64,000 bases of DNA from Piromyces finnis finn. Lineage: Eukaryota; Fungi; Neocallimastigomycota. Location of the stretch: assembly GCA_002104945.1 (NCBI GenBank), contig MCFH01000015.1:248001-312000 (forward strand). The letters run 5' to 3'. Shown here piece by piece: positions 32,056 through 37,235 of this stretch (its first letter is position 1; every line of letters begins with the position of its first letter). The position numbers were made by a program, and so were the translations under genes. The notes beneath the pieces are model-generated. The model had not been told where the DNA came from. It made no database searches and was given only the letters and a program-made list of their open reading frames with translations.

Positions 32056-33329
32056 ATTTTTATATTTTTATATATTAATTGAGAGTTAAATTTGATTGCT
32101 TTTTTTTTTTTTTTTTTTTTAAAAAAAATATATTGCTTTTGTTTATTATTATTATTTTTTATTTATTCATTTATTGTTTTGTTTTAATTATTTTTGTTTT
32201 ATCTTTTCTATTTCTTTTCTATTTTGATTCCTTTTTAATATTCCTTTTTCTTTCTTTAAAAACTTTTTGAAAATAAAAAAAATAATATTGAAATGTGGTA
32301 CAAAAAGATTTTTATTATTATTAATATATATAAATATATTTTTTTTTTGGTGATTGGATTTTTTCTAATTAATAAAGTTTCACAACTTTTATAATGAAAT
32401 TGATTCTTGAAAAAAAAGAAAAGTTTTTTTTTTTTTTTTTTTTACCTAATTTTAAGGTTTATTTATTTTTGTGTGTGCTTATCTATAATAAAATAGTTAT
32501 TCTTACTCTATATATTCTTTTCAATAATAAAACTATTTAACAAACCAAACAATTAATTTTTATAAATAATAAATGTTGTTAAGAGACGATATTTATTATC
32601 TTTCCTAATATTACTTTTTATTCATTATTAAATATAACTTTATTTTTTTTTTTTTTAAAGGTTTCATTACTATTATTAAATAAAAAGAATAAAATAAAAT
32701 AAAAATATAAAAATATATATTTTATTACTTTATTCTTATTGACTTTAAGTAAAGAATTGCTTTATTAAAATTGAAAATGAACCATGAAATTATCCTTTGA
32801 ATCAAAACTATGTTAATACTTTTATTATGTTTTACTATTTTATTAATAATCATTAAAGGGATAAATTAGCTTACAAAATTAATATATAAAATAAATAAGT
32901 ATATATTATTTCATATTATCTTTATGTTTGTTAGCAAAGTGCTTTTTATTGTGTAGTAAATTACAAATAAATTAAAGGGTATATATATATAATTGGTTTG
33001 GATTTTTTAAGAAAACATAATAATGAAATAATAGCTACTTTAATCTTGAATTTTTTTTTTTTTTTTCACCACTTTTAACTCTAAATTGTTGCATTCAATT
33101 TATAAAATAAAATAAAAAAAAAACAATTTATGAAATACCATTATGTATACATGGAGTATAAATGATAATATTAAGTTTTACTATTTTTATTAAATATTAT
33201 AAAAAAAAAAAAAAAAGCATTTTTATCTTTTTATCTTTTTATACAAAGGTATATAATTCTTTTATTGAATAGATACTACTAATAAAAAAAAAGTGCAGAA
33301 ATAATAAAAAAAAAATTTGTTCTTTTTTA

Positions 33330-33827
33330 TTAATATAATTTTTCAGATTTAGATTCTTCACAATAAATAATATTTGGCAATTGTTCCACTTGTTTAACAA
33401 TAGTATCTGAAAGATAGGCCTTTATAGTATAATAGTTCAACACTGGACAAACATATTTAACTAATTTTGAATTAATTGAAATATAATTAATTCTTGAATT
33501 AGGATTTGGTTTAAAATTTGATTTCGGTCTATTGTTATTAATAAATAAAAATTTAGAGTCTTTAGGAAGAGGTAAAGTTTCATAGAGTTCCTTTATGATA
33601 GCATCCTTTTCCCCATAGCTAACGACATTCTTACTAATAATGTCATATATCGTATTCATTCTATCATTCACTAATTCAACAATGGATTGTTGTACATCAT
33701 AAGTTTCTTGATCAAAATCTTTGTCTTGTTCACTTCTTTTTATACCAATGATATAAAAACTATTTCGTGCATGGACCATGTTAATTATAAAACAAAGAAT
33801 ACTTGTTATTAATAATAAAAACTGCAT
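33330..33827 (-). CDS. Secreted stand-alone subtilisin propeptide (I9-like), candidate protease inhibitor
   Basis: Signal peptide, then blocks homologous to the adjacent S8 prodomain: NSFYIIGIKR/NSYYIISIRR, VNDRMNTIYDIIS/VNERMNDIYDAIS, CPVLNYYTIKAYLS/CPVLNYYTVKAYLS, LPNIIYCE/MPNVISCE. Stops after KLY with no catalytic domain. Confidence 0.8.
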   Translation of the reverse strand: MQFLLLITSILCFIINMVHARNSFYIIGIKRSEQDKDFDQETYDVQQSIVELVNDRMNTIYDIISKNVVSYGEKDAIIKELYETLPLPKDSKFLFINNNRPKSNFKPNPNSRINYISINSKLVKYVCPVLNYYTIKAYLSDTIVKQVEQLPNIIYCEESKSEKLY

Positions 33828-34135
33828 ATATATATGTATAAATTATTTTTGTTTTTAATTTTAAATATTGAAATGTTGATATATATAATAATTATAAATA
33901 ATAGATAAATATATTTATTATATAAATTACTTTTTTTATTTATTTATTTTTTCTTAATTTTTTGGTGAAAAATGTCTTTTTTACACATTATTAATGTTGT
34001 TAATTGTAATTTTTTTTAATTAAAGAAGATTTAAAGTTGATAAATTTAAACTTTAATAATTTTATTATTTTATTAAAAATATAATTAATTTAGAAGAAAA
34101 AGTTAAAAGATATTTCCTTTATAAAAGTAGTAATT

Positions 34136-34169
<34 letters not shown>

Positions 34170-34457
34170 TAAAAACATAAAATCATATATATTATAAATA
34201 TGGGTTGAAAAGGATACTACCGTAATATAAAAAGTTTATATGATAGAAATAAAAAGTTTTGAATTAAAATTAATTGTAATAAAAATAAAATATAATAATA
34301 TTTATATGAAGGTATCAATAAAATAATAGATTATTTAAAAATAATATTCAATAATAATAAAAAAAATAATAGATTTTTAAATGATATATATTGGCATTAA
34401 ATTAAATTAAATTAGTCTTTTTTTTTTTTTTTTTTGGTTTAAAGTTTATAAACTATT

Positions 34458-36377
34458 TTATAAGTTATTGATGAAAGCATGATTGATATTAATAGATTTT
34501 ATTATGGTATCCAAGGATATACCATAAGCATCGACAGGGTCAATCATCATGACGTCACAAGAACCAAAATTACTTTGACATCCATTATTTATTTGGCATA
34601 ATCCATTTTTATCGTTCATTGGATTAACACAAACATTATCTTTGGAACAACAACCATTGGAACATTGAGTATTACCGGCGAGCGTACCACAACCTGAATA
34701 TTTATTATCTGAAGAATAAACAATATGTTTACCATTATTAACAAATCGATTAGGAGTAGTTTTTGAACCCATTTTCTTAACAATATTTTTAATAGACATA
34801 TTGATTAAGGTTTCTCTCATGGTTTTATAGGTGTATTTAGTATTTGGATGTTCACTCATGATTAAAGCAGCTAAACCAGCAACAATAGGAGAAGCAAAGG
34901 ATGTTCCTTCCACATAATCGAATTCTGAACAGGTTGTCGAAGAAGTACGGGAACAACCAGTGAAATCAGCTGTGGTAACAAAACCTGGAGCATGAAAATC
35001 AATACATTCTCCGTAATTTGAATAATAGGCTTCAGTGTAAATTCCACTTAATGAGCTTTCATCATTAAAGGTAGAAGCTACCCCAATAACATTATCATAG
35101 CCAACAAATTTATTTCTATAGGTTTTATCACAGGCATCTTGACCATCATTACCAGCAGAAGCAAAAATAAGGAAACCGGCATTTACAACTTCATTAATTT
35201 TATTTTGAATGTTTTTCTGGAAAGTGTCAATACCATTACGAGAGACATTAATGATACTTTTGTAGGGTTTTCCGTGGGTTTTAATGTAATCAAGAGCAAC
35301 AAGGAAATCATAGTCATAAAAATCAGTAGCAATCATATGAATATTTGCTCTTTTAGCAACACCATATTTATAACCAGCAGCAACAGAAGCAGAGGATGTA
35401 CCATGGAATTGATCACTTGATGTAATATCACAATTCCTTTTTTTCTCTTCGGTCATGATACCTAATTCTCCGTATTCAACAGTCATATCACAAGATACTG
35501 TACGTTCAAAAGTTTTTCCTTTGTAGGTTTTAAAATCAATATGATTTACAGAAATACCTTCATCGATAAAATACATATCAATAAATTGACCACCAGAGGT
35601 TGGATAGTAGTAGTTGTCATCATAACTTTTTACAAGGGTACTATTATAATTATATTGAGATAATACAGATAAATGTCTTGAAGCATTAGCCTGTACACCA
35701 ACAGAGGACCAACCAGTTTCTTTCTTTATATCATTAATATTATAATAGGTAGAAGAAGTGGTGTCTCTTTTGAACTTATTTGTCGTTGCTTTTGTTGCTT
35801 TTGCCGTATGAATATTATATTTTTTGTATTTTGGTTTTTCAAGTTTACCAGCTATTTCACAGCTAATAACATTTGGCATAAGTCTAACCTTTTCAGCAAC
35901 TTTTTTTGAAAGATAGGCTTTTACAGTATAATAATTTAATACAGGACAGAGATGACTTACCAGTTGAGATTCAAATGGAATATATTCAACATTTGAATTA
36001 CTTAAACCTTGACTTGTAGTTTTACTTTTTCTATTTTTGTTTTGAAATAAAAATTTTGTTTTTACATTACTATTTTTGCCACGTTTTCTCAAGGAAGAAG
36101 TTTCAATTTCATTTAATTTTTCGTCTATTTTTCCATCTTCTAATTTAAAAGTGTCTTTATTATCACTAATAGCATCATAGATATCATTCATTCTTTCATT
36201 AACCATAGTGTCAATGGAAATTTGGGTAGATGTTGTAGCATCATCATAATTAACATCAGTACTTTCACGTCTAATAGAAATAATATAATAACTATTTTTT
36301 GCAAATGATTTGTTTATAAAACATGATATTATAAATGTTATTAATAAAAGTTTATATAATGTCATTTTCTTTTTCAT
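34458..36377 (-). CDS. Secreted subtilisin-like S8 serine protease with propeptide and C-terminal CBM18 (hevein-type chitin-binding) module; intronless
   Basis: Catalytic motifs DMYFIDEG (Asp), FHGTSSASVAAG (His), ASAGNDG (oxyanion Asn) and EGTSFASPIVAG (Ser). Cys-rich tail CGTLAGNTQCSNGCCSKDNVC...CQINNGCQSNFGSC. Confidence 0.93.
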   Translation of the reverse strand: MKKKMTLYKLLLITFIISCFINKSFAKNSYYIISIRRESTDVNYDDATTSTQISIDTMVNERMNDIYDAISDNKDTFKLEDGKIDEKLNEIETSSLRKRGKNSNVKTKFLFQNKNRKSKTTSQGLSNSNVEYIPFESQLVSHLCPVLNYYTVKAYLSKKVAEKVRLMPNVISCEIAGKLEKPKYKKYNIHTAKATKATTNKFKRDTTSSTYYNINDIKKETGWSSVGVQANASRHLSVLSQYNYNSTLVKSYDDNYYYPTSGGQFIDMYFIDEGISVNHIDFKTYKGKTFERTVSCDMTVEYGELGIMTEEKKRNCDITSSDQFHGTSSASVAAGYKYGVAKRANIHMIATDFYDYDFLVALDYIKTHGKPYKSIINVSRNGIDTFQKNIQNKINEVVNAGFLIFASAGNDGQDACDKTYRNKFVGYDNVIGVASTFNDESSLSGIYTEAYYSNYGECIDFHAPGFVTTADFTGCSRTSSTTCSEFDYVEGTSFASPIVAGLAALIMSEHPNTKYTYKTMRETLINMSIKNIVKKMGSKTTPNRFVNNGKHIVYSSDNKYSGCGTLAGNTQCSNGCCSKDNVCVNPMNDKNGLCQINNGCQSNFGSCDVMMIDPVDAYGISLDTIIKSININHAFINNL

Positions 36378-37235
36378 TTTTTTCTTTCTTTCTTCTTATT
36401 ACTTTATAATAAATTAATAGTTTCTAAGAAAGTAAATTCATTCTATTTTTTAAATAAATAAATAAAAAAAAAAAAAATAAAAAATAAAATAAAAATCAAT
36501 TTTATATTAAATGGGTATAATACATTTTAACAAAAAAAATTAAATGGATTTATATTGATTCATATATTATTACATATAATGAATTGCTTAGATAAAAAAA
36601 AAAAAAAAAAAAGATAATTAAAAAGATCAATTTAATTATTATTATATTAAATATAATAATTTAATAAGAATATAATGTATTTATATATATAAAAACTCTA
36701 TTAATGCTATTTCAATGATAAAAAAAGTATCTTTGAAAAAAAGGAAAAAGTTCTTATTATTATAATATAAATAATACTATTTTAATCTCTTTTATATATA
36801 TAAATAGTTTTTTTTTTTAAAAAAAAAAAGAAATATTCAATACACTTTTTATCATTATTATCATACTATGCTTTAAAGGAAGTGGTAAAAGACTTTACCC
36901 TATTAAATTTACCTTGGTATTGATAGATTAAAAAATTTTCTTTGCACCAACCAAAATTATTAAAAAATTTTTTTTTTGTTACACAATTTGCATATTATTA
37001 TTAATATTGAATAACGTCGTAAACCACAACCACAACCACAACCACAACCACAACCACAACCACAGCAACAGCAACAGCAACAACAACTACTGGAACAACA
37101 ACAACAACAATAACTACTACTACTACTACTACTGGAACAACAACAACTAGAACAATAACAACACCAAAAAAAAAACTTTATGTTTTAACAGGCATTTATA
37201 ACTCAAAGTATAATGAAACTAGTATACAATAAGTT

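Follow-up and report, generated by a model that had tools for sequence, protein, structure and literature searches.

We analysed a 64,000-nucleotide stretch of the Piromyces finnis genome (contig MCFH01000015.1, positions 248,001 to 312,000; this whole stretch is the window, and positions are counted from its first letter). Downstream of an S8 protease gene it holds a small gene that probably encodes, on its own, a paralogue of the enlarged, I9-like pro-region of S8 enzymes, with a likely role as inhibitor or chaperone; we put the probability of this reading at roughly 60%. The two genes are intact open reading frames (ORFs) on the minus strand of this strongly AT-rich DNA (20.6% G+C), as are all of the features described below. 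The small ORF (33330..33827, 165 aa) follows the protease ORF (34458..36377, 639 aa) at a distance of 630 bp. An earlier note, made from the sequence alone, had placed the pair at these same coordinates and had taken the small gene for a free-standing prodomain derivative. That it is a functional gene of this kind is supported by its expression, conserved position and constraint, and by a predicted fold like that of propeptides and POIA1. The note had also held that the small gene resembles the prodomain only, with no catalytic remnant, and our searches agree. BLASTP matched the small protein only to residues 10-174 of the S8 protein (45% identity, E = 5e-37), and tblastn with the S8 protein across the full 64 kb found neither a catalytic remnant nor a further S8 piece.

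The shared region also heads S8 enzymes elsewhere. A search with it returned 12 longer homologues, all with an S8 domain (PF00082) and some with CBM18; two of these are labelled Anaeromyces robustus and Piromyces finnis (P0013 being the latter). When 1.84 billion representatives were searched exhaustively with a family profile, 104 proteins matched, 97 of them at E ≤ 1e-10, the majority with the pro-region at the N terminus of a protein of full S8 length, and the family was met here solely in gut-fungus-type sequences. The small protein keeps every invariant pro-region residue (21 of 21). Free copies could be recovered only by this exhaustive search, as a word-based protein search with the 165-aa query returned nothing except the window's own database model, P0001.

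The AlphaFold model of the small protein (pLDDT 81.6, pTM 0.77) has a ferredoxin-like beta-alpha-beta core plus extra strands; strand 1 begins at residue 22, and the last strand (153-158) is followed by an unstructured tail. Among 48,161 PDB representatives, the best structural match was the Aspergillus fumigatus Alp1 propeptide (8gko_A; Z 7.0, r.m.s.d. 3.0, 84 residues), followed by the PCSK9 prodomain (Z 6.1), POIA1 (1v5i_B, Z 5.7), pro-subtilisin E (Z 5.7) and the BPN' prosegment (Z 5.2), although values of 5-7 are usual for ferredoxin-like folds. Foldseek listed pro-subtilisin E and the Alp1 propeptide in its first rows, but with E values above 0.1. Neighbours of the small protein in the Atlas, both by language-model features (0.90) and by structure, bear PF05922. 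The fold by itself is unspecific, because ribosomal S6, ACT and MORF domains score similarly; it is because the module heads S8 enzymes that the I9-like reading is secure. Pfam Inhibitor_I9 (PF05922) matched neither the small protein nor the S8 precursor, even at E ≤ 1; the I9 assignment rests on the predicted fold and the context. The small protein is of the I9 type in that it combines a ferredoxin-like fold, homology to an S8 N-terminal propeptide and a separate gene without a peptidase unit.

Synteny, one of the checks that the earlier note had proposed, extends to two further gut-fungus assemblies, where a free copy and the S8 gene upstream of it share a strand. In GCA_002157105.1, a 183-aa ORF (copy a) is found 1.8 kb downstream of a 644-aa S8 protease that is 63% identical to that of the window, and in GCA_002104895.1 the 172-aa P0065 (copy b) is found 3.6 kb downstream of its S8 gene; at neither locus was there S8 similarity downstream of the free copy. 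A third type, P0078 (170 aa), sits on 21 metagenome contigs and has no S8 gene within 6 kb upstream. The fourth type comprises fusions without a protease in gut-fungus-type metagenome sequences: P0094 (L008 2291-3109) consists of a leader, CBM18 and the pro-domain, then a stop; P0084 of a leader, the pro-domain and proline-rich repeats; and P0113 of the pro-domain and CBM1. Other short profile matches (P0021, P0028, P0038, P0043-45, P0048, P0057, P0073, P0077 and P0088) were set aside as fragments or broken models, because they either break off within the domain or continue into the catalytic part, at its YYN..IKKET.W start. P0017 and P0068, which may or may not be free copies, branch within the full-length enzymes in a phylogeny.

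In this phylogeny, a maximum-likelihood tree of 77 pro-regions, the small protein clusters with copy a (SH-like approximate likelihood-ratio test (SH-aLRT) 85) and then with copy b (87). The S8 protease of the window clusters with P0003, P0004 and the S8 protease adjoining copy a (SH-aLRT 99), apart from the free copies. As the free copies group separately from the neighbouring S8 genes, the duplication predates these species splits. The earlier note's proposal of a partial duplication of the protease's own prodomain therefore holds in so far as the small gene derives from the pro-region family, but it is not a copy of its neighbour. The free copy of the window sits on a far longer branch (0.63) than its ortholog (0.13), suggesting quicker change in this lineage. 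The ratio of non-synonymous to synonymous substitution rates (dN/dS, NG86 method) between the small gene and copy a is 0.27 (dS 1.05), against 0.36 in the pro-region of the S8 gene and 0.21 in its catalytic domain for the same genome pair; these values are rough because dS, at about 1, is near saturation. The test for neutral evolution that the earlier note had also proposed thus gave no sign of it. By this sequence measure, the free copy is constrained like a working pro-region, and the small gene is of old origin and has been maintained, which sets it apart from a local copy in decay.

These results bear on two further explanations. That the small ORF is a non-functional leftover of partial duplication, open by chance, might be suggested by its long branch and by the single database protein of similar length in the word search. 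It is very improbable and close to refuted, given intact orthologs in at least three other sources, a dN/dS of 0.27, transcription in four runs (see below) and the lack of any frame break despite a duplication older than the species splits. A second possibility is that the I9-like fold has been reused outside proteases, for example to bind ligands at the wall or surface, in the manner of the plant MORF/DAG proteins. MORF proteins are among the structural matches with similar scores, fusions to CBM18, CBM1 or proline-rich repeats occur among related free copies, and the small protein has a variable tail as well as its long branch; plant DAG-like genes are also reported to resemble inhibitor I9 (PMC5515838). 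We regard such reuse as quite unlikely in the face of the retention of every pro-region invariant, constraint like that of a working pro-region and synteny with S8 genes across genera.

Expression of the small gene is indicated by transcript-like contigs from four public runs of three studies, which we aligned on positions 32900-36700 and which had only been guessed to be RNA beforehand. The small gene is covered at 33306-33821 (X1) and 33259-33821 (X2), with 0-1 mismatches, and by two shorter pieces; the S8 gene is covered colinearly at 34449-36355 in two runs and at 34454-36300 and 34477-36299. Both genes have contigs in all four runs, and in none of the four do contigs cover the intergenic spacers around them. 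Beyond 33821, the X1 contig continues with 23 letters that equal 33931-33953 of the minus strand exactly, a 23-mer that is unique in the window. The skipped 109 nt start with gtaatt and end with atgcag, and thus form a spliced GT-AG intron (33822..33930). Because this contig crosses a spliced junction, the contigs stem from RNA. The stop codon lies inside the mRNA, and as it and at least 71 nt past it are colinear with the genome, there is no hidden downstream exon.

The 5' end of the gene departs from the earlier note, which had called it intronless: the one assembled transcript form carries the 109-nt intron, and this intron contains the ATG that the note had proposed as the start (33825-33827). 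The 3' end of the non-coding upstream exon (33931..33953) has an in-frame TAA four codons ahead of the junction, so that the spliced form can start only at the codon-17 ATG (33777..33779). Its product, MVHARNSF..., would be 149 aa long and without a leader, with a maximum 10-residue hydropathy of 0.76 versus 2.94 for the full ORF. Contigs of three runs end at or cross precisely 33821, and no contig in any of the four runs covers 33822-33870. The note had further given the small gene its own signal peptide. This is not confirmed: the leader-coding codons are open, in frame, intact and like those of the neighbouring S8 leader, but the spliced form starts at Met17 without a hydrophobic leader; secretion is uncertain in this genome because the 5' intron removes the leader ATG. 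Public protein models start at internal methionines for both genes (Met17 for the small gene, P0001, 149 aa; Met58, at about 36204-36206, for the S8 gene, 582 aa). We rejected them as evidence of start sites, which are unreliable in models of this AT-rich genome: the model of the ortholog is likewise shortened, although its ORF extends further and has an ATG upstream. If the upstream exon reaches as far as 33954-34000, it includes a short upstream ORF (ATG TGT AAA ... TAA) before the small gene. Other contigs of 440-1907 nt, from three runs, share 18-22-nt words with 33471-33492 and 36274-36291 at conserved motifs, and may represent paralogous S8 genes that are expressed, or matches by chance in AT-rich sequence.

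A tentative alternative, to which we give well below even odds, is that translation of the spliced mRNA from Met17 gives the main product. This protein would have no signal peptide and would act inside the cell like PBI2, which is reported to inhibit vacuolar proteinase B (bioRxiv 10.64898/2026.05.05.722857), guarding the cytosol or early secretory pathway against premature S8 activity. The sole assembled 5' form, with its in-frame TAA, fits this course, as does the uncovered stretch at 33822-33870, and the Met17 product would retain the whole domain, whose first strand begins five residues after that methionine, at residue 22. However, the hydrophobic leader has stayed in frame and intact like that of the neighbour, and in all three orthologs, from three other sources, an upstream ATG is present together with a hydrophobic core. 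In addition, 33821 is the exact point at which contigs from two other runs break off, as may be expected at a branch between two coexisting 5' forms, one spliced and one unspliced or later-starting; assemblers may have lost the short 5' tips.

One sequence feature distinguishes free from enzyme-linked pro-regions. The loop that follows the second helical region carries [KR]R in 63 of 71 enzyme-linked pro-regions, typically as L-x-K-R, versus 0 of 6 free copies, which have [LF]P[LI]P-x-[ND] or a similar sequence there; as these six copies form only about two lineages, the contrast reflects few independent events. In the S8 protease of the window, the column survey places the motif at R97-K98-R99 (36081..36089), and the family alignment puts L85-P-L-P-K-D90 of the free copy (33558..33575) in its place. 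To judge by sequence, the motif may be a kexin-type site whose cleavage helps to release the enzyme. If so, its loss would make the free proteins durable, longer-lived inhibitors.

Our preferred reading, a free-standing pro-region paralogue, leads to the following mechanism. The small protein would bind mature S8 enzymes of the family in trans, like a cleaved propeptide, with its folded core docking beside the substrate cleft. The short C-terminal tail, S159-Y165 (33333..33353), a candidate active-site-binding segment given the model and its spacing, would then occupy the non-prime subsites up to Tyr165 and block the enzyme; binding may additionally assist S8 folding. The free lineage would have arisen by an old partial duplication, been retained beside the S8 gene in several genera and lost the dibasic loop. 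We infer the binding, the inhibition, the role of the dibasic site and the site of action, whether secreted or cytosolic.

The position of the tail in this protein agrees with that in the BPN' prosegment. The small ORF terminates PNIIYCEESKSEKLY and the BPN' prosegment (PDB 1spb_P) terminates DPSVAYVEEDHVAHAY; both end 14 residues past the conserved proline before the last strand, with a Tyr, Glu-Glu and the final Tyr in register. For this protein, the register that the earlier note had pointed out is thus confirmed, down to the shared terminal Tyr. P0078 and P0094 also end 14 residues past that proline, their last residues being Ser and Asp. Against a strict C-terminal register, stop positions differ among orthologs (14, 18 or 25 residues), an outcome that the note itself had named as speaking against its idea. 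The register is suggestive, and it is not conserved across orthologs.

Several observations weigh against the preferred reading. In addition to the missing PF05922 match, the commonplace Z scores, the near-saturated dS and the few free lineages described above, the family profile found no propeptide relative among PDB sequences, with one chance match only. With 18 and 25 residues, the tails of the two closest orthologs are 4 and 11 longer than here, the tail sequence is not conserved and one copy has a long C-terminal extension. The S8 linker exceeds that of canonical enzymes by about 40 residues, and the equivalence of Tyr165 to P1 is only a candidate one. Finally, as there is no leader in the assembled transcript form, the inhibitor might not encounter a secreted protease. 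In five close homologues, an aromatic residue that lies 10 positions past the last strand was considered as a match for Tyr165; it requires two one-residue gaps and coincides with the conserved YYN motif in the homologue with the shortest linker, and we did not rely on it.

The free domain might also serve chiefly as an intermolecular folding chaperone, for S8 enzymes whose pro-region is kexin-cut or defective, with durable inhibition secondary. A chaperone function besides inhibition is reported for subtilase propeptides and for the free yeast and Pleurotus ostreatus inhibitors (bioRxiv 10.64898/2026.05.05.722857), an S8 gene adjoins the free copy in several genomes, and both genes of the window are represented in all four runs. 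We nonetheless consider this an unlikely primary role: the neighbouring S8 protease and nearly all of its relatives retain a complete pro-region of their own, and a chaperone in trans therefore looks redundant.

The neighbouring gene is a peptidase S8A of the proteinase K subfamily, by profile, by the Asp-His-Ser order with the oxyanion Asn and by fold. Its 639-aa product (ORF, PF00082 match, structural model and transcripts agreeing) comprises a leader, a pro-region of about 150 aa, a long linker, a proteinase K-like catalytic domain and a cysteine-rich C-terminal motif. Pfam Peptidase_S8 (PF00082) matches it at E = 1e-25. BLASTP and two family alignments delimit the pro-region, the part homologous to the small gene, at residues 27-184 (35826..36299). 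The catalytic domain spans residues 222-550 (34728..35714), with the triad D272/H325/S493 and the oxyanion N410 all in invariant columns of an alignment of 13 homologues. PDB sequence matches of the catalytic part were aqualysin, keratinase, proteinase K and PCSK9, and within residues 227-550 the model superposes on proteinase K, aqualysin and keratinase with Z scores of 35-38 over about 270 residues.

Past the pro-region, the S8 model shows a short strand (185-187), a disordered stretch (190-210, pLDDT 36-37) and a helix (214-221), with the canonical mature start falling near residues 220-227. A second dibasic site, K203-R204 (35766..35771), lies in the disordered part of this linker of about 40 residues, and similar KR sites are present in close homologues; given this site, maturation of the S8 protease could need kexin beyond autoprocessing alone. 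At the C terminus lies a hevein-like eight-cysteine motif (34548..34700). The earlier note had assigned a CBM18 to the protease and called it chitin-binding. The CBM18 label was not upheld: PF00187 scored 13.3 bits against a cut-off of 27.8 (E = 0.1) and covered only profile positions 2-23 of 38. The eight-cysteine spacing is present, yet CCSKDNVC replaces the CCS-aromatic-G-aromatic-C of relatives with a true CBM18, and because the profile threshold is not reached, chitin binding by this protease is at most putative. A splice at the 5' end of the S8 gene, where contigs end at 36355, was considered and found unsupported, as there is no AG there and low-complexity stretches are masked.

PBI2 and PoIA1 lack leaders, whereas the small ORF and its orthologs bear a secretory leader, lie in tandem with an S8 gene and have CBM-fused relatives. 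The group to which these inhibitors belong consists of independent free I9 inhibitor genes, known from Saccharomyces cerevisiae (PBI2), P. ostreatus (PoIA1/2), Trichoderma reesei (TrI9, which ends at P1 in its model) and plants (bioRxiv 10.64898/2026.05.05.722857). Like PBI2, PoIA1/PoIA2 and TrI9, the small gene is independent and encodes a propeptide-type, ferredoxin-like domain alone (the POIA1 match, 1v5i_B, Z 5.7, extends over 70 residues), and its candidate active-site tail would sit where those inhibitors enter the active site. In contrast to theirs, its domain has roughly double the length (about 145 aa), with extra strands and a variable loop, is not recognized by Pfam I9 and derives from a pro-region family met here solely in gut-fungus-type sequences. 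The small gene most likely belongs to this known kind, here in a new fungal lineage.

The closest structural counterparts are propeptides proper, namely the BPN' and E prosegments (1spb, 1scj and 3whi) and the Alp1 propeptide (8gko). These are parts of precursors and are degraded after activation, whereas the small protein would be a separate product without the dibasic loop site. In kexin/furin-type convertases, cleavage of the prodomain at a second internal site releases inhibition, and the S8-linked pro-regions studied here resemble them in carrying a conserved internal dibasic motif (63/71), although their catalytic domain is proteinase K-like and the motif is only a candidate cleavage site. 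The plant subtilisin propeptide-like inhibitor, which we take to be the secreted SPI-1, is likewise a free I9-type protein, aimed at extracellular subtilases; it comes from another kingdom and is unrelated in sequence to the small protein, and we know of no tandem arrangement of the plant inhibitor and its protease.

Hardly any work exists on how anaerobic gut fungi control proteases, and our search of the literature on gut-fungal protease control and subtilisin inhibitors found nothing. These fungi secrete large enzyme complexes that must outlast their own and foreign proteases. A role of the small protein in guarding walls or cellulosomes is speculation, to which the CBM-fused relatives point. 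More broadly, and with low probability, gut fungi may keep a kexin-resistant family of free pro-domains, soluble or tethered through CBM18 or CBM1, as a long-lived extracellular shield on their own proteinase K-type proteases at the wall or cellulosome, with alternative 5' splicing or start choice giving secreted and leaderless forms at the locus described here. Surveys based on Pfam overlook this entire gut-fungal pro-domain family, and the dibasic contrast suggests a simple rule by which transient and durable propeptide inhibitors could be told apart. Free I9 inhibitors already protect recombinant proteins in Trichoderma (bioRxiv 10.64898/2026.05.05.722857), and a divergent, naturally secreted version could serve likewise. 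For the gut fungi themselves, a conserved, expressed free pro-domain beside a protease provides a concrete and readily cloned candidate regulator.

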